From NCBI GenBank assembly GCA_964036045.1, contig OZ038378.1, forward strand, positions 2,728,001 to 2,792,000: a stretch of 64,000 bases of DNA, written 5' to 3'. A model generated the notes under the pieces. It had not been told where the DNA came from and did not search any database. It saw nothing but the letters and a program-made list of their open reading frames with translations. Positions 1,903 through 60,430 of this stretch are shown here, in pieces. A program made the position numbers and the translations under genes. How positions within the stretch are numbered: position 1 is the stretch's first letter; each line of letters opens with the position of its first letter. The DNA comes from Eutreptiella sp. 'Long Island Sound 2002'. Its lineage: Eukaryota; Protista; Euglenida.

Positions 1903-4480
1903 AAGGAGTCATACGCCGTGAAGCCACGAGCCCATAGTGATTCATGACAATCAGAAGCCAAGCATTAAGGTGTCCACGAAATCCGCAAACCTCTTGGACT
2001 GCGGCCCAGTACGGGCCTTAAAGTGAACATTGATTGCAAAAAAAAACCTCTTGGGCTCAACAATCGACAGGTTGCTCACCATCATTGACGATGAGATGCC
2101 CTTAGCTTTGACAACGAAACACATGTACAAAAAATGATCAACGAAATCTAGAAGATCACAGGACGATCTGTTCACCAAAGTCAAAAAACATGGTCCCTCA
2201 ACCCGTGCGAAAGGATGTGGTCCAGGTGCGACTGTTGCACCTAAGACACACGGCCACGGGACTGGCATGAATAAGGAGGAGGCGCAGTGCGTGGTAAAAT
2301 TGGAGACCAACATTGCGACTTGAAAGTGAACATGGCACAATTGAAGGAGCAGAATCAACAAATCAATAACACGCGTTTGGATGACATGTCACAATCCATG
2401 GAGAACACGGAGGTCGCAAGACAAAAGGACAGCTATATCCTCGCGATGCTAGCCACCCATTTCAAGTTGGGATCACTGAACATGAACAACAACGGATGAC
2501 CGGTTGCAGACCTGTACTTGGTCCACGGTACCCCAATGCAACGCATAACGTGTGCCCAATCGCAGATGCACCCAGGTGTAGTACCGGAAATGCCCGAGAA
2601 GGACGAGGAGATGCGTGATGCACATGGGGCAAAGCAACCTATCCCATTCCCCTGAAAATCGATTTCACGGGGGCAACACTGAGGTAAAACCACGCAGAGT
2701 TACTGTACAACGCCACACAAAACCGCCACTTGCCCGCGTGGCATTGTGCACGCGTAAGGGCACAACCTCGCGGCTAGCCAACCTAGCGCGAGCACAGAAG
2801 CGCACACGAACACGACCAGCGCAAGTCACAGTACCACCCGACCCAGATAGCCCACAACACACACACGGCACGCACGTCGAGACAAACTGACTAGACACAG
2901 GGCCACGGCCACACATGGAAGTGCACCCACCCACCCTCCCCACCAAGAGAAGTGGAACCCACAATACACATGTCAAACCCCAAACAGGCCCGGTTTTCGA
3001 ACTGGTCCAGGGGTCAAACCGAGGTGCAACTAGGGAACATGTCCCTTGACATGACTCCTACTCGTTGCTTTATCTCGGTAACCAAAACACACAATGCCTC
3101 TTAGCGTGTACAATGCATGCATGGGCATAGTACACATGTAGGTCCTTGCTAGCACACCTCGTGGTGGGCTGGGCCCATAAATGCATGGGTCCAATCAAGC
3201 ATGTGTACGAGGCTGGGACATGCACATGCGATGAAACCGGACCCTCAGTGAATGGAAAAGACTGATTCAGGTCAGATAGGCACCGCCAGTGCTCGCTTCA
3301 CCTTTTACCAGGTAATGGCCGTTTGAGAAGCCGTTTTCTTTTCTTTCTCTGCTTTGCCAGTCTTCGTACCAAGTGAATGGGCAATGCAAGAGCAAGCACT
3401 GATACTACTGGACGAAGAGGATCCCTAGACACGGACGCTTCCAACGCTCCCCTTGCGCTGAAAATGGTGGGCAAATGCGCTGGAATGGCCCACCCTCCGA
3501 AATAATACCCCCCCCCCCCCTGTACCCAGTTGGTACTATAGTGCTAGTGAAAATGTGCCTGCCGACACCCCACAACCCGCACGTAGTACGGCGGGCGGTC
3601 ATGCAAGGCCCAGGGTACAATCAGCATTGGCAGCTCTGCCGATCATCAACTTGAAGATAGCACTCAGACTACCTGTGCGAAGCGTGCCACAGGGTATGCG
3701 ACAACCACGGAAACTGCCGGATAATGAGGGAACCATGCCCTGACAACAAAAGCAACGTGCCCATAAACACATGCCAACACAGCCCATAGCCCCTAGAACA
3801 CGATCACACACCCCACATCGGAAAAGCGACCCCAACCAAAGAAACCTGGTGACACTGGAGCCTGGTTATACGCAGAGGACACACCCACCCAAGCAAAAGG
3901 CAAAACCGGCATGAAGGTAGCCGCAGAAACAAGCACAAGTCAGAGTATCCATTCGTATGCGACACACAGTGCAGGTGGTGGCATCAGGGACGGAAACCCA
4001 TATGCAGGGTTGGCAATTGTTCCAATTCCATGACATGTGGGATCAGCGCTGCAGGCGCCCCACCTGAACTTGATGCGGGTCCTATAAATGAGTAAGTGAG
4101 ACCCAACCGTGCAACCGATAGGATGTACGACGTCATGCATAGTAACTGTTGACCCTTTGCAGGCTCTCGGGGCATCGCAGGGTCTGGGGATTCGGGCTAG
4201 ACTTGGGGCTTAGGGGGTTATGAGGTGTGACAAGTGATTCTGGGGGGGGGGCAGCAGAAAATGAGCTTCATGAAGTGTTTCAGAGCAATACACAGGGGGG
4301 CGGGGCGTTTACCACGCCGTATCCAAAATCCCACACTTATAATGACCCGCCGCTTCTAGGGTCTGGCCATTTGTGTTGGCCGAGGATGAGAATCAAACCA
4401 ATAGTCGGGGGGCGTTGAGTGCAGTGCCGCATCAGCCGGAGGGCAGGCCGTTGCACTTGACGGTCAACTGGGGGCAGGTC

Positions 4481-4507
4481 ACGTTCTGAGTGCCTGCCTT
4501 GTTTCAG
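4481..4507 (+). other. Relic euglenid spliced-leader-like sequence upstream of the PAP gene
   Basis: ACGTTCTGAGTGCCTGCCTTGTTTCA matches the euglenid SL as I recall it (ACTTTCTGAGTGTCTATTTTTTTTCG) at 19/26 positions without gaps. It ends 18 nt before the ATG. Confidence 0.6.
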
Positions 4508-4525
4508 GTCGGCTCTTCTGTGGCC

Positions 4526-6100
4526 ATGCACCTGCATGCACTGGCCCTGTACTGGGCTGTGGCCCTCACAGACGCCATGTTTGACGGGATTTACCCGCAT
4601 CACGAGCATCCTCCCAACTGCAAACACGGTTGTGCCCTCTGGTCGGATTTGGCTGCAGATGGCTGCGCGGCGTCTCAGTCCGAAGCCAATGCGCTGTGGT
4701 CCGGAGGCGTGCCGCCCGCCGCGGCCTCACGATTCTGTGCAACCCCAGCCCACAATCCCGGCGAAAATGCGGGCTGGTGCTATTGCCGGGACAGCGGCTC
4801 TGAGGCATGGGGTTACTGCACGCCGTCTTTGCACTACCCTTCAGAGCTCGGGGTCTATCCCGTGAAAGACGGTGCTGTGGTCATTGCCTTCGTGACGCTC
4901 AGTCAGAATCAGTCCGATGGGGCGCCTGAGGTCACAGTCGAGCCTTCGCCTTCAAAGCCCGTGAACTCCTGGAGCATGTGCCCTGCTGGCGGCACTGCCA
5001 CCCACCGAGTCATGCACTTTGTTTTCTTGGGAGGCCTCGCTCCCTCTGTGCTCTACAAATACCGTGTGAGAAGTGGGTCCCCAGAGGCCCCCTGGAGCGA
5101 TTTTGGTACTTTCGTGAGTCTGCCGGAGGCTGGCGCCGCCACACCGTTCACCTTTGCGATTTGGGCAGATATGGGGGTGTACTCCTGGAACAATATGGAC
5201 AGTGTAATTGCAAACTTTGAGGCTCGAACCATCGCATTCGCCGCGCACATTGGGGACCATGGCTACGACATTGGGGATCTTGGGCGTGGGGACGGCTATT
5301 TCGATGCGATCTCTGCCATGTACACCAAAGGGCTCTTCGTACCGGGCGTTGGGAATCATGAGTACTACCACGACCATTTCCATAGGTACGACGCATATAC
5401 GAGTGGGATCGCGAAGTACAACCCGTCGCATTCTCAAAAATACTACAGTCTCAACATCGGCCAGCTGCATCTCATTGTTCTGGATTCCACGCCATATTTT
5501 GACATGCCGGGCAGCGACAAGGCCCAGCAAAGGGAGTGGTTGGAAGCGGATTTGAAGCAGGTGAACCGGACGCGCACGCCTTGGATCCTGATGACAGCTC
5601 ATCACCCGTTGTACTGCTCCTCCATCACTTTCTATGACGATGACGCCAAGGCACAGCGCTACGGGGCCAACTATTCCAGCCAAGGGGGCTTCCAAGGATG
5701 CGTGGGATCGGGGGAGGAGCAGGTGGCTGCCATGCGAGCGGACTGGGAGCCGCTCATGCTGGCATATGGTGTGGACGTCTACATGTGTGGGCACGAGCAT
5801 AACTATGAGTCCATTTACCCTGTGGCCAAAGGGAAGCGGATACAGAGCAGTTTCACGGACCCCCGTGCCCCCGTACACATAGTCAGCGGTGCTGGAGGTG
5901 CCCCAACGTTGGACCAGTTCGGCCCTCCCGGGCCATGGACACGGTTGCAGCTCAATAACGCCTGGAGCTACTCCAAAGTGACGGTGCTCGGGGCACATGC
6001 ACTGAAGTGGCAGCAATATTTCAACAGTTATTATGGGGGAGGGCTCGCTGACGAGTTTGTTATAACCCAAACTGCACACGGACCGTTCAGAGGGAATTGA
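4526..6100 (+). CDS. Secreted purple acid phosphatase (ACP7/PAP-like metallophosphoesterase) with N-terminal Cys-rich kringle-like module; intronless
   Basis: All five PAP motif blocks are present (DMG, GDHGY, GNHE, TAHH, GHEH), preceded by an FN3-like PAP N-domain (...YKYRVRSG...WS...F). The hydrophobic N-terminus MHLHALALYWAVALTDA looks like a signal peptide. ATG 4526 follows a TTGTTTCAG acceptor, so the ORF-track start at 4490 is not used. Confidence 0.92.
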   Translation: MHLHALALYWAVALTDAMFDGIYPHHEHPPNCKHGCALWSDLAADGCAASQSEANALWSGGVPPAAASRFCATPAHNPGENAGWCYCRDSGSEAWGYCTPSLHYPSELGVYPVKDGAVVIAFVTLSQNQSDGAPEVTVEPSPSKPVNSWSMCPAGGTATHRVMHFVFLGGLAPSVLYKYRVRSGSPEAPWSDFGTFVSLPEAGAATPFTFAIWADMGVYSWNNMDSVIANFEARTIAFAAHIGDHGYDIGDLGRGDGYFDAISAMYTKGLFVPGVGNHEYYHDHFHRYDAYTSGIAKYNPSHSQKYYSLNIGQLHLIVLDSTPYFDMPGSDKAQQREWLEADLKQVNRTRTPWILMTAHHPLYCSSITFYDDDAKAQRYGANYSSQGGFQGCVGSGEEQVAAMRADWEPLMLAYGVDVYMCGHEHNYESIYPVAKGKRIQSSFTDPRAPVHIVSGAGGAPTLDQFGPPGPWTRLQLNNAWSYSKVTVLGAHALKWQQYFNSYYGGGLADEFVITQTAHGPFRGN

Positions 6101-6202
6101 TGTCCAACCTCCGATTCATTTCTGTTGCAGTGGATTGCTTTAGCCTTTTGCTGCACTGACCTCTATTTTGTTTCTCTCCCTAGCCACAGCTTGCGCCCAA
6201 GC

Positions 6203-6740
6203 CAGGCTTCGTTTATAAGAGCTATTTTGCAATGGGGGGGGGTGTCTGGGTGGGTGGGTCTTCAGCCGGGTGGGTGGGTCTGAAGCTCTGGACCCCCCCC
6301 CCTTTATAATTCTGAGTGTCTCCTGGGTTGGGCTCCAGCCACCCCTTCTTTCTTTGGTCACAGGTGCCTTGTCTGGCTGTTTGCTGGTGCCCCCTTCCGC
6401 TTGTGCAGACACCATGCCAAAATCTCCTTGTGGTTGTGGGGCACTGGTTGGAGCCTCTGAGCAGCTACCGGCGGGGTCGTACATTTCTTGGCATGTACGG
6501 CAGCATCAATGGGTGCCTTGCATATTGATGGTTTCCTTTTTGCTATATGTGTCACCCTTTGGGGCTGGGATGCCTAACCCGGGAGAGCGCCTTGGCTTCA
6601 ATTTGGTTTGCAAAAAATGCTCCCCACAGAATTATAAGGGGGGGGGGTCTGGGTGGGTCAAAAGTCGGGTGGGTGGGTCCAAAGTTGGGTGGGTGGGTCT
6701 TGTCCAAAATACTCCCCCCCCCTCTTATAAACGAAGCCTG
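6203..6740. mobile_element. hAT-type MITE (538 bp)
   Basis: Perfect 19-bp TIRs CAGGCTTCGTTTATAAGAG (6203-6221) and CTCTTATAAACGAAGCCTG (6722-6740), flanked by an exact 8-bp duplication GCCCAAGC (6195-6202, 6741-6748). An 8-bp TSD and a CAGG terminus are hAT hallmarks. No coding capacity. Confidence 0.9.
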
Positions 6741-6748
6741 GCCCAAGC

Positions 6749-6900
6749 CATAGCTCTCGCTAGTTTCAGCTCTAGCCCCGGCTACAGCCCTAGCCTTAGC
6801 CCTAATGCTAATATCAGCCGAGACCTAGCCCCAGCTCTCGCCTCACTTCCAGCTCTGGCCCCAGCTCTGGCCCTCACTTTAGCCCCAGTCTTCCCCGTCT
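6749..6900. repeat. Degenerate hexamer-phased run (AGCCCT/AGCCCC-like)
   Basis: Six-base periodicity, e.g. CTAGCC CCGGCT ACAGCC CTAGCC TTAGCC CTAATG. Confidence 0.55.
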
Positions 6901-7059
6901 TCCCTTCAGTCACATTCCTAGCCTGATCGCCTGCATAACCCTGGCCCGAGGCATCCTAGCAATTATTATCATTGCTGCCATCAATCTCCATCACGAGCTG
7001 TCTTTTGATTGGCGCCCCGCGTACTTGTGGTTCAGTTCCTTCGCCACGAAATGGACCTC

Positions 7060-7795
7060 GGGAGTCCAAGAGGTTCAATGGTGAACCCCCTTTTTGACAC
7101 CACGGACCTTCCATGCCCTCTGTGTCCCAAATTCACCCTCAAGATCCTGCGTTGCATTTTGCCAATTGCGACGTCTTGGAAGCATTCAGGACCAGAATGT
7201 TGTACCTGGGATGTCCAGTGCGTTCGGGTAGTACAGTGTCCGGTGTGGGAAAGCTGGCTATTGGCTTGCTCCCTGGTCCCCTTATCTTCAAAAGATGCGG
7301 TACTTTCTTGTCATACCCCACGGGGGAAACATGCCTCCGTTCAGTTAGTGTGTAAGTCGATGCCTGCTCGAGAAAACGCGTCTCAGATTGTCAAAGACGT
7401 TCCAGGCGAAAGGGAAGCTGGATTTTCACTTAGGGGGGGAAGCCCCAAAGAAATGTTGGATGGGACTGCAGTCTTTTACATCGGATCCCTCAGCTCATGC
7501 CGACCCCGACCACAATGCACTTTCCACTGAAACAGCGTTGCATTGTTTTCCTGGTGTGGCGATGGCCGAACATGGTGCCAACCTGATTGGCAACTTTTAA
7601 TCAAGGGGAGTGGCGCTCAGGGAACTATGGGCGGAGGTGTTAGATATGGTAGCAGTGAGGGCAGAGCTGTTTGCACCACAGTGGGTGCCGTCCAACAGGA
7701 ACATCTTTGGTCATGATTGGACAGATGAGTTGGTGGAACAGGGTTGGGTTTGGCCTCAGTTGAATGGATACAGTCATGTTGCACAGGGTTAGCCT
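7060..7795 (+). mobile_element. Decayed DIRS-like (tyrosine-recombinase retrotransposon) RT and downstream domains
   Basis: RT motifs occur in the expected order and spacing despite frameshifts: DL...PKFTL, D-VLEAF, LAIGLLPGPLIF (LPFGL..AP.IF) and V-stop-VDA (YVDD) at ~7350-7364. Downstream ELFA...NIFGHDW...WVWP resembles the DIRS methyltransferase-like domain. Confidence 0.68.
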
Positions 7796-7799
7796 GCAG

Positions 7800-8002
7800 G
7801 GGTGGGGGTGGGGGGTCAGGGTTGACACTACATTGTATACCTGCACATGTGGGTTCATGGCATGGTGCTGCTTCCTAACAGCTGACAGTACGTTGACCAG
7901 GTTGTGCCGACCACTGACCTGCCCTTTTGGTCTACCCCCCTCCATTTTTGTTGTAATCAACCACGCCTTGAATTCGGCGTAATGTAATTCATCAATCGAC
8001 AT
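7800..8002 (-). pseudogene. Possible tyrosine-recombinase N-terminal fragment, antisense to the RT
   Basis: ELHYAEFKAWL...NVLSAVRKQH resembles the 'f..wL...yLSAir..H' core-binding segment of tyrosine recombinases. No catalytic R-H-R-Y residues are visible. Confidence 0.3.
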
Positions 8003-8274
8003 ATTGATTGATATGGATCGAAATATGTGTCCTCCGTCCCATGCCTCATGCAGCAGGGCACCCTGTCATGCGGACACTGCATCAACCCCCTTCCCTCTTT
8101 TTTTAGGAGCTGTTGGACTCCGGTCTTTGGTCGGTGCCTTCTGCCACCCTTTTGAGTGTTGCGAAAGTGAACGTGACCAATGTGTTTTCCAAACGGGCGT
8201 GTTGGGTCATGACTAGGGAATGGCTGACCACGTGGGAACACATATCACAAATTTGTGGAGGTGGCGTGGCGCAG

Positions 8275-11200
8275 GGCCATTGCACTTGGGCCATTAACTT
8301 CAGCCATGCACTTGGGCCATTAACTTTAGCCATGCACTTGGGCCATGAACTTTAGCCATGCACTTGGGCCATTAACTTCAGCCATGCACTTGGGCCATTA
8401 ACTTCAGCCATGCACTTGGGCCATTAACTTTAGCCATGCACTTGGGCCATGAACTTTAGCCATGCACTTGGGCCATTAACTTTAGCCATGCACTTGGGCC
8501 ATTAACTTTAGCCATGCACTTGGGCCATGAACTTTAGCCATGCACTTGGGCCATTAACTTAAGCCATGCACTTGGGCCATTAACTTTAGCCATGCACTTG
8601 GGCCATGAACTTTAGCCATGCACTTGGGCCATGAACTTAAGCCATGCACTTGGGCCATTAACTTCAGCCATGCACTTGGGCCATTAACTTTAGCCATGCA
8701 CTTGGGCCATGAACTTAAGCCATGCACTTGGGCCATTAACTTAAGCCATGCACTTGGGCCATTAACTTTAGCCATGCACTTGGGCCATGAACTTTAGCCA
8801 TGCACTTGGGCCATGAACTTTAGCCATGCACTTGGGCCATTAACTTTAGCCATGCACTTGGGCCATGAACTTTAGCCATGCACTTGGGCCATGAACTTAA
8901 GCCATGCACTTGGGCCATTAACTTAAGCCATGCACTTGGGCCATTAACTTAAGCCATGCACTTGGGCCATGAACTTTAGCCATGCACTTGGGCCATTAAC
9001 TTTAGCCATGCACTTGGGCCATGAACTTAAGCCATGCACTTGGGCCATTAACTTAAGCCATGCACTTGGGCCATTAACTTTAGCCATGCACTTGGGCCAT
9101 GAACTTAAGCCATGCACTTGGGCCATTAACTTAAGCCATGCACTTGGGCCATTAACTTTAGCCATGCACTTGGGCCATGAACTTTAGCCATGCACTTGGG
9201 CCATGAACTTAAGCCATGCACTTGGGCCATTAACTTCAGCCATGCACTTGGGCCATTAACTTTAGCCATGCACTTGGGCCATGAACTTTAGCCATGCACT
9301 TGGGCCATTAACTTTAGCCATGCACTTGGGCCATGAACTTAAGCCATGCACTTGGGCCATTAACTTCAGCCATGCACTTGGGCCATTAACTTTAGCCATG
9401 CACTTGGGCCATTAACTTAAGCCATGCACTTGGGCCATTAACTTTAGCCATGCACTTGGGCCATGAACTTTAGCCATTTGCGTGGGCCATTAACTTAAGC
9501 CATGCACTTGGGCCATGAACTTAAGCCATGCACTTGGGCCATTAACTTAAGCCATGCACTTGGGCCATTAACTTAAGCCATGCACTTGGGCCATTAACTT
9601 AAGCCATGCACTTGGGCCATTAACTTAAGCCATGCACTTGGGCCATTAACTTAAGCCATGCACTTGGGCCATGAACTTTAGCCATGCACTTGGGCCATTA
9701 ACTTTAGCCATGCACTTGGGCCATTAACTTCAGCCATGCACTTGGGCCATTAACTTAAGCCATGCACTTGGGCCATTAACTTTAGCCATGCACTTGGGCC
9801 ATGAACTTTAGCCATTTGCGTGGGCCATTAACTTAAGCCATGCACTTGGGCCATGAACTTAAGCCATGCACTTGGGCCATTAACTTAAGCCATGCACTTG
9901 GGCCATTAACTTAAGCCATGCACTTGGGCCATTAACTTAAGCCATGCACTTGGGCCATTAACTTAAGCCATGCACTTGGGCCATTAACTTAAGCCATGCA
10001 CTTGGGCCATGAACTTTAGCCATTTGCGTGGGCTATTAACTTAAGCCATGCACTTGGGCCATGAACTTAAGCCATGCACTTGGGCCATTAACTTAAGCCA
10101 TGCACTTGGGCCATTAACTTAAGCCATTGCACTTGGGCCATTAACTTAAGCCATGCACTTGGGCCATGAACTTTAGCCATTTGCGTGGGCCATTAACTTA
10201 AGCCATGCACTTGGGCCATGAACTTAAGCCATGCACTTGGGCCATTAACTTAAGCCATGCACTTGGGCCATTAACTTAAGCCATGCACTTGGGCCATTAA
10301 CTTAAGCCATGCACTTGGGCCATTAACTTAAGCCATGCACTTGGGCCATTAACTTAAGCCATGCACTTGGGCCATTAACTTTAGCCATGCACTTGGGCCA
10401 TTAACTTCAGCCATGCACTTGGGCCATGAACTTTAGCCATGCACTTGGGCCATGAACTTAAGCCATGCACTTGGGCCATTAACTTAAGCCATGCACTTGG
10501 GCCATTAACTTTAGCCATGCACTTGGGCCATTAACTTTAGCCATGCACTTGGGCCATTAACTTCAGCCATGCACTTGGGCCATTAACTTCAGCCATGCAC
10601 TTGGGCCATGAACTTTAGCCATGCACTTGGGCCATGAACTTTAGCCATTTGCGTGGGCCATTAACTTAAGCCATGCACTTGGGCCATGAACTTAAGCCAT
10701 GCACTTGGGCCATTAACTTAAGCCATGCACTTGGGCCATTAACTTCAGCCATGCACTTGGGCCATTAACTTAAGCCATGCACTTGGGCCATTAACTTTAG
10801 CCATGCACTTGGGCCATTAACTTTAGCCATGCACTTGGGCCATTAACTTAAGCCATGCACTTGGGCCATTAACTTTAGCCATGCACTTGGGCCATTAACT
10901 TTAGCCATGCACTTGGGCCATTAACTTCAGCCATGCACTTGGGCCATTAACTTCAGCCATGCACTTGGGCCATGAACTTTAGCCATGCACTTGGGCCATG
11001 AACTTAAGCCATGCACTTGGGCCATTAACTTCAGCCATGCACTTGGGCCATTAACTTAAGCCATGCACTTGGGCCATTAACTTTAGCCATGCACTTGGGC
11101 CATTAACTTCAGCCATGCACTTGGGCCATTAACTTCAGCCATGCATTTGGGCCATGAACTTTAGCCATGCACTTGGGCCATTAACTTAAGCCATGCACTT

Positions 11201-58462: not shown

Positions 58463-60430
58463 ATGTCGACGCTTGGCATGAAAGGGGGCCCGAAAGTCCC
58501 CAACGCTGCATTCGTTCAGAAGCTCCACAAAGTGCTTGATTCTTTATTGGGCTCAACGAACATTGACACTGTCCTTTTTTCCAAGGAGTCGGTTGCCGTA
58601 CACCCTTTGGGTGTTGATAAGGAGGGTATTGATGGAACTGTCTTCTTTCTATCGCAAAAAGCGACGGGCGGTGTGGAGAGCAAGTTTTACCTTTGTTGGT
58701 TGCCTGATTCTATATTAGCAATCATAAACCAGGGGCTCCTCGCGCCATCATCCAAGTACTCAAAGCCCAGCAACCAATCTTTTGGATCGCAACCAAATGC
58801 CTCTGGGTCACCGGATACAACTCCTGACCACCAAATGCATGTATCTGAGCTTTCTACCGCATATGACATGCACACCTTTGAGCATTCCCCCGATTGGATG
58901 CATGCCTTTGCGATTGAATCAAGTGAAATTCACATTCTCAAGCAAACAGTGGAACAATTCCGATGGTCTTGTCTTGCCATAGCAAGTAAAGCGGGCATTG
59001 AACACCCTCCGTTGTACTTCCATGATGGTGGATTGGCAAAATTGATGTCCCAACTGCAGCAGAAGATGAATTTGACAGAAATTGCCCCCGGCACATATCG
59101 TGTTGAGCCGTTCAATGAGAAGTTGAGGAAGTCCCTCAATCAACTTAATCTTGGTGGCTACGCGAACATCCTTGAAAAGCCAAGTTTTTCTTTACTGCAA
59201 TTAGGCTCAAAGGTGACAAAGAAATTTCGGGAAACCGGTGCGCTCTTGACCGGGGCTCAGGAAAAGAGCATGTTGGAGGACCTGGCCTTGGGGGATATTG
59301 AAGGTGCAAGAAGACAAGATTCCTGGTGCAACATCGACTTTGAGCAATTACCGTCATCCTCAGCTTCGTCAGAGCCCGTGGTAGCAGCTGCTGGCCCAAA
59401 GCCCAGCGAGAAAATTAATGACGCACCAGGTTTGAGACAACCCATGGCCTGGGAAACGCCAACCCAGGCCAAACGGAACGCGGAACCTTTGACAGAGTGT
59501 CGATGGCGTGCTGGATTTGACGAGGAAGGGCGCATGAGCTCTGACGAATGGACACACATCAAGCAAGCGATTTTTGATGGGGGTGTAGAGGCTTCCATCC
59601 AAGCACAAGTATGGCCCTTTATTTTGGGGTTCTACAAGCCGGACAGCACTGCCGCAGAGCGCGCTGTGTATCGACAGCAAAAGGACAGTGAGTATCACCA
59701 GTACAAGCAGCAGTGGACCAGCATCACCGCTGAGCAAGAGTCCCATTTCAAGGAGTTTCGAGACCGACGGTGGCGGATAGAAAAGGATGTTGTGCGAACC
59801 GATCGGCTCTATCCATTTTACGAAGATGAGACCAACATCACGATGCTGAACGACATCCTCCTCACTTATTCGTTCTACAATTTCGATCTGGGGTATTGCC
59901 AGGGGATGGGAGATTTACTTTCGCCGCTGTTGATGCTGCTGCAAGATGAGGTTGACGCTTTCTGGGCATTCGCCTGCGTGATGGACTCATTGGGGGGGAA
60001 TTTCAACCGCGACGAGAATGCTATGCAATGGCAATTGACTGCCATTGGCAAGCTGCTGAAGGTCGTGGACCGTCATTTGTGGGACTACTTTGAGCAAATG
60101 GATGGGTTGAATTTCTTTTTCTGTTTCCGCTGGATTCTGGTGCGCTTCAAAAGAGAGTTTGAATATCCAGACATCTTAACCCTGTGGGAGGTCCTTTGGA
60201 CTTGCCCTTTCGCGGACAACGGTCTGGACTATCATTTGTGGATGTGTGTGTACCTTCTGCACAGCAAGCGGTCGACTATAGTCAACGAGGAGATGAAGAA
60301 TGACGACCTCCTCAAGTACATGAATGACCTCAGTGGCAAACTGAACGTAACAGAGCTCATCTGCAATACAAATGCGTTGCATGAGGCTTACCGGGACACC
60401 CCCATTCCGCTTTGCCTCAAGAATCAATAA
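58463..60430 (+). CDS. TBC1D15/TBC1D17 (Gyp7)-like Rab GTPase-activating protein, 655 aa, intronless
   Basis: The TBC domain has IEKDVVRTDR (Arg finger), YCQGMGDLL (Gln finger), FFCFRWILVRFKREF and LWEVLW. The N-terminal PPLYFHDGG block is typical of this subfamily. ATG follows TTTTCTCTCTAG. Confidence 0.93.
   Translation: MSTLGMKGGPKVPNAAFVQKLHKVLDSLLGSTNIDTVLFSKESVAVHPLGVDKEGIDGTVFFLSQKATGGVESKFYLCWLPDSILAIINQGLLAPSSKYSKPSNQSFGSQPNASGSPDTTPDHQMHVSELSTAYDMHTFEHSPDWMHAFAIESSEIHILKQTVEQFRWSCLAIASKAGIEHPPLYFHDGGLAKLMSQLQQKMNLTEIAPGTYRVEPFNEKLRKSLNQLNLGGYANILEKPSFSLLQLGSKVTKKFRETGALLTGAQEKSMLEDLALGDIEGARRQDSWCNIDFEQLPSSSASSEPVVAAAGPKPSEKINDAPGLRQPMAWETPTQAKRNAEPLTECRWRAGFDEEGRMSSDEWTHIKQAIFDGGVEASIQAQVWPFILGFYKPDSTAAERAVYRQQKDSEYHQYKQQWTSITAEQESHFKEFRDRRWRIEKDVVRTDRLYPFYEDETNITMLNDILLTYSFYNFDLGYCQGMGDLLSPLLMLLQDEVDAFWAFACVMDSLGGNFNRDENAMQWQLTAIGKLLKVVDRHLWDYFEQMDGLNFFFCFRWILVRFKREFEYPDILTLWEVLWTCPFADNGLDYHLWMCVYLLHSKRSTIVNEEMKNDDLLKYMNDLSGKLNVTELICNTNALHEAYRDTPIPLCLKNQ

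Follow-up and report, generated by a model that had tools for sequence, protein, structure and literature searches.

A decayed spliced-leader copy upstream of a single-exon purple acid phosphatase gene as the probable mark of an old retrogene

Spliced leaders (SL) are joined to mRNAs only by trans-splicing. Slamovits and Keeling reportedly described, in 2008, DinoSL-relic retrogenes in dinoflagellates. Such retrogenes (reviews: PMC6050394, PMC12014239) are recognised as retroposed from mature mRNA by a leader copy that lies in the genome ahead of the coding sequence, and the relics decay with age. Both traits recur at the locus presented here, and in the searchable literature SL relics are described only for dinoflagellates. 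The locus lies in a 64,000-nt stretch of DNA, called the window, and consists of an intronless purple acid phosphatase gene headed by a degenerate leader copy. Its anatomy and the accompanying statistics make it very probable that the gene is an old SL-tagged retrogene, derived from a mature mRNA that was copied back into the genome. The features of the locus are the following.

4480-4506, plus strand: decayed SL relic, a C at position -1 followed by 26 nt, with 19/26 identities (20/27 with the C) to the E. gracilis SL
4484-4492, plus strand: intact SL core TTCTGAGTG, containing the SL-internal AG 4489-4490 (candidate acceptor)
4493-4507, plus strand: decayed SL tail, a 12/15 pyrimidine tract ending in CAG (candidate acceptor)
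4508-4525, plus strand: presumed 5' UTR, 18 nt if spliced at 4507 and 19 nt in the inferred parent mRNA
4526-6100, plus strand: single-exon purple acid phosphatase, 524 aa plus stop, with a signal-peptide-like N-terminus
6101-6179, plus strand: short 3' flank of unique sequence that lacks an A-rich run and is presumed to be left from the 3' UTR
6180-6763, no strand assigned: high-copy repeat complex at the 3' end of the presumed retrocopy, recognised by inverted repeat I1, direct repeats D1-D4, depth and hairpin

The relic at 4481-4506 (+) agrees without gaps with the Euglena gracilis SL, ACTTTCTGAGTGTCTATTTTTTTTCG, at 19 of 26 positions and contains the exact 9-nt core TTCTGAGTG at 4484-4492 (+); recomputation thus returned the 19/26 match with intact core that an earlier note on this DNA had reported. 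The mismatches fall on SL positions 3, 13, 16, 17, 18, 21 and 26, and five of the seven are transitions, as the same note had said of most of them. They are unevenly spread, the head of the relic matching at 11/12 and the tail at 8/14 positions, and overall the divergence from the SL amounts to 27% (Jukes-Cantor d ~0.33). A C is present at -1 (4480), and such a C precedes 29 of 30 perfect dispersed SL copies as well as the SL in SL-RNA genes. The relic has the sense of the phosphatase gene and is separated from its ATG (4526) by 19 nt; the short gap given previously therefore stands, whereas its value of 18 nt is obtained only by counting from G4507 of the CAG. A gap of this size lies in the range of 0-22 nt that all but one of 30 perfect genomic SL copies show (the exception has 60) and is typical of Euglena 5' UTRs. 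The stretch 4508-4525 contains neither an AG nor an ATG.

The gene behind this relic is well preserved. Its open reading frame (4526-6100) matches the profiles Metallophos (PF00149, E-value 4.3e-9), Metallophos_C (PF14008, 7.2e-9) and Pur_ac_phosph_N (PF16656, 4.8e-4), the last with a score of 21.1, under the Pfam cut-off of 30. All five metal-binding motifs are intact (DMG, GDHGY, GNHE, AHH and GHEH). The protein thus shares with purple acid phosphatases the domain set (PF00149, PF14008, PF16656) and the motifs DxG, GDxxY, GNHE, xxxH and GHxH, and it differs from them in an N-terminal extension of ~125 aa that contains Cys and in the N-terminal domain scoring below the cut-off. A single exon (1,572 nt) holds the whole phosphatase, 96-98% of which is covered by alignments with homologues of 521-573 aa, and the nearest relatives, at ~40% identity, are eukaryotic and include choanoflagellates and MMETSP transcripts. 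Phosphate starvation typically induces purple acid phosphatases. Searched in six frames, the whole genome yielded no paralogue above 37% identity, the best being at 34-37%, and neither a close paralogue nor a parent with introns. Published E. gracilis genes have 3.85 exons on average with a median exon of 112 nt, and most are cis-spliced (PMC6366073). Several of the distant phosphatase paralogues also lie in long open frames, without SL-like sequence, and the intronless state is therefore not diagnostic by itself.

Among protein records the product occurs only as the genome's own ORF (ENA assembly, identical sequence), which says nothing on expression; an exact look-up of the 524-aa product and a query with the N-terminal 150 aa returned no other record, a result equally uninformative on this point. 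For the neighbouring TBC gene, too, the only record comes from the genome. An exact-pattern scan of metagenome contigs with the 5' UTR and start gave no match. Four sequencing runs of the organism covering 3000-8000 consist of genomic unitigs with flat single-copy depth and are uninformative on transcription and on SL addition. One metatranscriptome shares 0.07 of the query, which is about the size of the query's repeat segment and probably reflects that repeat.

The genome in which the locus lies provides ample precedent for leader copies of this kind. The 26-mer ACTTTCTGAGTGTCTATTTTTTTTCG is the SL of this genome: it has 2,588 exact copies, where a reversed control has none, and the SL-RNA genes, of which more than 1,300 copies are scattered through the genome, begin with it. 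About 2,600 dispersed SL copies genome-wide are not followed by the SL-RNA intron; some of these intron-less SL tails are unique and bear an ORF, others belong to a retroelement family that carries the SL at its front, and there are nested relics as well. Large-scale retroposition of SL-bearing RNAs is demonstrable in this genome. Moreover, it contains 58 perfect junctions at which an SL tail is directly followed by the 16-nt stump TGTCTATTTTTTTTCG; these show that the SL-internal AG is used as an acceptor on relic-bearing transcripts.

An SL copy bounded by the exon border, a short 5' UTR of typical length and a complete, intron-free ORF together lead us to infer a retrogene made from mature mRNA. 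A trans-spliced and cis-spliced mRNA would have been reverse-transcribed and then inserted into the genome. Without gaps, the SL-RNA gene is matched in its exon only (19/26, against 5-9/26 in the flanks), as is expected of a spliced mRNA copy. The retroposition proposed in the earlier note is supported by an SL-derived match in sense orientation, a normal UTR distance, an intronless gene and genome-wide SL retrocopies. The event would be an old one: the relic has diverged by more than a quarter, no poly(A) or target-site duplication can be recognised and the parent copy is gone, so that the phosphatase would now be the only copy, an 'orphaned' retrogene. Its expression would need upstream transcription and a fresh leader.

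The leader relic is the only mark of an RNA origin at the phosphatase locus. A poly(A) remnant was sought 3' of the gene and no A-rich run was seen, and no word longer than 9 nt, as a target-site duplication would leave, is common to the 5' flank and 6098-8500. The lack of both is weak evidence, because it is expected at such age. Single-copy depth in the DNA unitigs persists to about 6116-6230. The repeat at 6180-6763, which reaches 100-500 times that depth, breaks up or masks the presumed retrocopy at its 3' end. It has imperfect inverted ends of 42 nt and contains two G-run/C-run hairpin units, with TTATAA on their flanks.

The match at 4481-4506 is confirmed as real SL-derived sequence, beyond chance, and it is significant against a composition-matched background, a point on which the earlier note had made its reading depend: when the 200 nt upstream of the gene (4326-4525) were shuffled, at least 19/26 was reached in 5 of 200,000 trials (2.5e-5). 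By chance, 0.03-0.11 such matches are expected per strand per 64 kb under i.i.d. and Markov models of order 1 and 3, and 20 scrambled-SL control patterns run on real sequence (211 kb) gave 0.3 per window on both strands at the same threshold. Within the window only two matches of at least 18/26 exist on both strands (128 kb), at 4481 and 58405, both on the plus strand and each directly 5' of a long single-exon ORF, and these two ORFs are the only recognisable genes of the window. Likewise, the exact core TTCTGAGTG occurs twice against 0.33 expected. The previous observation that two of two intronless genes carry an SL match, independently, is upheld by the second, separate relic, which lies 54 kb away in front of the window's other recognisable gene. 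Upstream of ~25 paralogous and other ORFs, the best match was 16/27, against 20/27 at the phosphatase.

Coincidence is the strongest of the competing explanations, improbable as it is. It would see in the relic an ordinary acceptor region, a pyrimidine tract with CAG, that happens to follow an SL-head-like 12-mer, the gene being intronless ancestrally or by in-place loss of introns. The tail indeed matches no better (8/14) than any pyrimidine tract would, and because any acceptor tract is pyrimidine-rich this part is little informative, so that the case rests mainly on the head. Under a harsh null, in which a T-rich tract stands in register at every position, the probability of at least 19 matches rises up to 2.3e-5 per position; this overstates the risk, since native acceptor tracts of E. 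gracilis are C-rich rather than T-rich (PMC11170887). A Smith-Waterman comparison with the whole 326-nt SL-RNA gene unit scores 26, within the range of shuffles (maximum 28), many windows were examined for such matches, some chance ones being expected, and distant paralogues likewise lie in long open frames, without relics. Against coincidence stand the head alone, whose 11/12 identities are expected at ~2.5e-6 per position or ~2.5e-4 per 100 positions, the rarity of 19/26 among the local shuffles, the sense orientation of the window's only two strong matches before its only two recognisable genes, and a high prior given by thousands of SL retrocopies in the genome.

A second alternative, very improbable, holds that a DNA-level fragment of a dispersed SL-RNA gene, a pseudogene remnant and not an mRNA-borne leader, happens to precede the phosphatase gene. 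The more than 1,300 scattered SL-RNA gene copies could supply such fragments, and a gapped alignment extends the similarity by AGGT-C upstream and GGT downstream of the exon. Ungapped flank identity, however, is at the level of chance (7-9/26 upstream, 5-8/26 in the intron) and is not improved by register shifts of 1-2 nt; in place of the ~75-nt SL-RNA intron there are only 19 nt before the coding ATG, and the relic borders coincide with the spliced exon. On the chance-level identity of its flanks, an SL-RNA pseudogene origin was rejected. Scarcely credible, finally, is a selected cis-element, a promoter-like or splicing-enhancer mimic of the leader in place of a fossil: the 9-nt core is perfectly kept while the remainder has decayed, and a promoter role has been proposed for retained DinoSL relics in dinoflagellates (PMC6050394), but nine matches in a row are nothing unusual at 73% identity, no element of this type has been described in euglenids, and selection would explain the maintenance of the sequence and not its origin, being compatible with a relic.

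If the gene is an SL-tagged retrogene, its decayed SL tail is, as the earlier note proposed, a plausible candidate for a new trans-splice acceptor. The 3' end of the relic reads TTTCAG, as noted before, and lies at 4502-4507. The AG at 4506-7 has 12 pyrimidines among the 15 nt upstream, and no other AG lies between the tract and the ATG; within the CAG (4505-4507), the A derives by mutation from the last base of the SL, and the old 5' UTR begins with the G. In E. gracilis the outron consensus places CAG behind a pyrimidine tract rich in C (PMC11170887), and the CAG at 4505-4507, after a partly C-enriched tract, fits it. This CAG has nearly even chances of being the acceptor; it would have arisen when the G that ends the leader, within a CpG site, mutated to A, and the mRNA would be one base shorter than that of the parent. 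The intact internal AG at 4489-90, missed in the earlier note, is an alternative candidate of a type documented by the 58 genomic junctions. Its use, by which the mRNA would retain a stump of 16 nt, appears doubtful, and it is rather unlikely that another site is used or that the gene is silent. Transcripts could be told apart by the bases that follow the leader, since the sequence right after 4507 reads GTCGGC and that right after 4490 reads TGCCTGCC.

It is possible, though somewhat less likely than not, that the T-rich tail of the leader is a ready-made acceptor tract, so that euglenid retrocopies would be 'born trans-splice-ready'. Here one CpG transition together with the first G of the old UTR would have yielded a consensus CAG, and each transcript would be re-capped to resemble the parental mRNA, one base shorter. 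In young relics, G26>A, the change that creates the AG, shows no genome-wide excess: it is found in 9/235 with a following G and in 60/2428 without (Fisher p 0.2-0.8). This gives no support for selection and counts as weak evidence against it, weak because the young copies are mostly repeats. If trans-splice-ready tails were general, they would help explain the good survival of SL-tagged retrogenes in the genome.

The Euglena gracilis genome comprises 2.3 Gb, and its growth is poorly understood. Leader relics offer an intron-independent mark of RNA-mediated gene duplication, and the phosphatase case indicates that they are still recognisable at a decay of about 27%. An ordinary single-copy enzyme gene as an old retrocopy would support the view that mRNA recycling has shaped the Euglena gracilis gene set.

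Compared with known systems, the locus resembles the processed retrogenes of mammals, which are mediated by L1: it is probably the intron-free product of a spliced mRNA, placed at a new site where signals for expression have to be acquired. The marks by which those retrogenes are recognised, namely a parent with introns, a poly(A) tail and target-site duplications, are none of them detectable here. With the fresh SL-headed retrocopies and the retroelement family of the same genome it shares the order of C at -1, SL, short UTR, ATG and ORF; unlike these 26/26 copies, the phosphatase relic (19/26) is much older and less certain, and it heads a single-copy cellular gene without surviving parent. 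The DinoSL-relic retrogenes are the closest parallel. Their repeated trans-splicing, which leads to stacked relics, has its counterpart here in the 58 junctions of SL tail and 16-nt stump. The lineage, in contrast, is Euglenozoa and the leader is unrelated (26-27 nt, with a T-rich tail). DinoSL relics were first seen in cDNAs, whereas the phosphatase relic is known from DNA alone; DinoSL relics are 5'-truncated stumps, whereas the phosphatase relic keeps the full-length leader. Unlike in DinoSL relics, its tail may itself have become the acceptor, and the phosphatase locus thus provides a concrete, testable case in which an old leader may have turned into a new acceptor.

The 26-nt spliced leader (SL) of Euglena gracilis, ACTTTCTGAGTGTCTATTTTTTTTCG, is present in 2,588 exact copies in the 2.28 Gb genome of this euglenid, compared to 0 copies of the reversed control. 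Where the next base is G, the sampled copies stand at the head of SL-RNA genes: the sequence upstream is conserved, and an intron starting with GTAT follows. Copy number and position at the head of SL-RNA genes identify ACTTTCTGAGTGTCTATTTTTTTTCG as the SL of the source organism. One SL-RNA gene copy (locus L013, G000:C1:29492-29517) has the usual upstream flank and GA instead of GT at its 5' splice site (CG/GATTATTT), and is presumably dead.

Ahead of the phosphatase gene, the ungapped 19/26 match with an intact core described in the earlier note was reproduced at window positions 4481-4506 (+), with TTCTGAGTG exact at 4484-4492. Identity amounts to 11/12 in the head and 8/14 in the tail, an overall divergence of 27% (JC d ~0.33). 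The mismatches are mostly transitions, as had been remarked (5/7; P = 0.045 under equal rates), a bias that is equally expected from a pyrimidine tract.

That this resemblance arose by chance is unlikely. I.i.d. and Markov models predict 0.03-0.11 matches of at least 19/26 on each strand of 64 kb, and 20 scrambled SL versions, run on the real sequence, predict 0.3 per window with both strands counted. Two were seen, while the minus strand has none of at least 17/26. Both are in sense orientation directly 5' of the only two ORFs of the window in which protein domains can be recognised, the phosphatase and the TBC gene at 58463, which bears out the 'two of two' of the earlier note. Its condition of significance against a composition-matched background was addressed with shuffles of the 200 nt preceding the ATG, 5 of 200,000 of which reached at least 19/26. 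A null made harsh on purpose, in which every position has a T-rich tract in register, yields P = 2.3e-5 per position for at least 19/26; since the acceptor tracts native to E. gracilis are rich in C (PMC11170887), this figure is too generous to chance. Upstream of about 25 other long frames in the fetched loci, the best match is 16/27, compared to 20/27 at the relic. The 9-mer SL core occurs twice in the window against 0.33 expected, the second copy inside a 12-mer discussed below.

A fragment of an SL-RNA gene would also carry the leader, and is a very improbable source. In register with the SL-RNA gene, the exon matches at 19/26, whereas two upstream blocks reach 7-9/26 and three intron blocks 5-8/26, and register shifts of 1-2 nt do not improve the flanks. 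The similarity coincides with the spliced exon, starting and stopping at its borders. The relic is preceded by C (4480), like the SL-RNA genes (...GGTAC/ACTTT) and 29 of 30 perfect copies of the dispersed SL (loci L019-L048, contig C1), which suggests a retroposed leader of at least 27 nt. The gap from relic to ATG is 19 nt; in the 30 perfect copies the first ATG follows at 0-22 nt, with one exception at 60. Exon-limited identity, the preceding C and the UTR-length gap point to a leader probably carried on an mRNA. In the same perfect copies, the leader is mostly followed by A. A selected SL-like motif is the least probable explanation.

The gene itself is intronless, as previously claimed. 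From the ATG at 4526, a frame of 524 codons runs to 6100; its product is a purple acid phosphatase that has Metallophos and Metallophos_C domains, a sub-threshold Pur_ac_phosph_N match, 5/5 metal-ligand motifs and a signal-peptide-like N-terminus. Alignments with homologues of 521-573 aa cover 96-98% of the product, showing that the phosphatase is complete in a single 1,572-nt exon. In published models, most E. gracilis genes undergo cis-splicing; a CDS has 3.85 exons on average, and the median exon length is 112 nt (PMC6366073). An exon as long as that of the phosphatase is therefore atypical, though not unique. Several distant paralogues likewise lie in long open frames, without SL-like sequence. 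The closest paralogue in the genome is only 34-37% identical, so there is no parent gene, and a search around the gene for an A-rich remnant and a target-site duplication gave no candidate. Given the divergence of the relic, such marks are expected to have faded, and the relic is the sole mark of RNA origin at the locus. In agreement with the independent retroposition proposed earlier, the phosphatase is most probably an old, orphaned, SL-tagged retrogene.

Unique sequence 3' of the gene ends after about 80 nt at a high-copy repeat complex, whose depth in the organism's DNA unitigs is 100-500x the single-copy level. Features on this side are:

6180-6763: the repeat complex, whose ends form an imperfect 42-nt inverted repeat (6180-6221 and 6722-6763)
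~6216-6309 and ~6633-6732: two ~95-nt units within the complex, each with TTATAA on both sides and each forming a hairpin from its G-run, GGGTGGGTGGGTC repeats and C-run
6310-6321: exact SL 12-mer TTCTGAGTGTCT (SL positions 4-15; overall SL match 16/26) within the complex, possibly a captured leader fragment or a chance match; its first five bases are part of an inverted repeat of 21 nt (6294-6314 and 6627-6647)
8276 to beyond 9500: 26-bp satellite, consensus GCCATGCACTTGGGCCATTAACTTTA, at least 47 copies, 95% matches

The earlier note further proposed that the decayed SL tail became a new trans-splice acceptor at AG 4506-7. Five AGs lie between 4440 and the ATG, and this one is the only AG between tract and ATG. 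It has 12/15 pyrimidines upstream, reads CAG and would leave a UTR of 18 nt. The final base of the leader, a CpG site, has mutated to supply the A, and the G is the base with which the old UTR began. Three mismatches in the relic tail are T>C and shift the tract toward the C-rich tract and CAG that form the consensus of 11,921 E. gracilis outrons (PMC11170887). These changes fit the proposal without proving it. The internal AG 4489-90, left out of that account, is also intact and is a candidate acceptor with genomic precedent in the junctions described below. Among young relics, no preference for an AG-creating G26>A was seen (9/235 with G next, or 6 with a tandem cluster taken as one, compared to 60/2,428 otherwise; Fisher p = 0.2 and 0.8, respectively), and most young copies are repeats without such selection. 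The organism's four runs are genomic DNA unitigs, look-ups for the phosphatase and its TBC neighbour found neither proteins nor contigs derived from transcripts, and a metagenome scan for the phosphatase 5' UTR and start gave no match. In one of the four runs, X5, the G-run 4240-4252 is one base short at window position 4242, through either a length polymorphism or a homopolymer error. Rebirth of the tail as an acceptor is conceivable, at slightly below even likelihood, and the relic is chiefly of value as a well-defined case on which to test this process.

Genome-wide, 1,234 exact 26-mers are followed by a base other than G. The exact 16-nt SL tail occurs 2,368 times with non-G next and 226 more times with G then non-T; controls for these counts gave 0-1. 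Among 30 loci drawn from the 1,234 are an SL-headed retroelement-like family, nested relics and several unique sequences in which the SL leads through a short UTR into a long ORF. About half of these perfect copies, which lack a following SL-RNA intron, belong to an abundant repeat family with a perfect SL then ATTGACCCTCAGCATTTTGTTGATGGATCC (L022, L023, L029-L031, L033-L036, L039, L040, L042-L044, L046). Retroposition of RNAs that carry the SL is thus common here, which gives the relic a high prior. In 58 perfect junctions, partly in arrays with 16-nt spacing, the 16-nt stump TGTCTATTTTTTTTCG follows the SL tail without a gap (for example at C1:55396077-55396122 and at locus L020, the latter with three stacked relics). 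These junctions show that relic-bearing transcripts were repeatedly trans-spliced at the internal AG of the leader and then retroposed again. The searchable literature describes SL relics as retrogene tags in dinoflagellates only, with no Euglena paper found, and it is in dinoflagellates that the same pattern of renewed trans-splicing and retroposition is known (PMC6050394).
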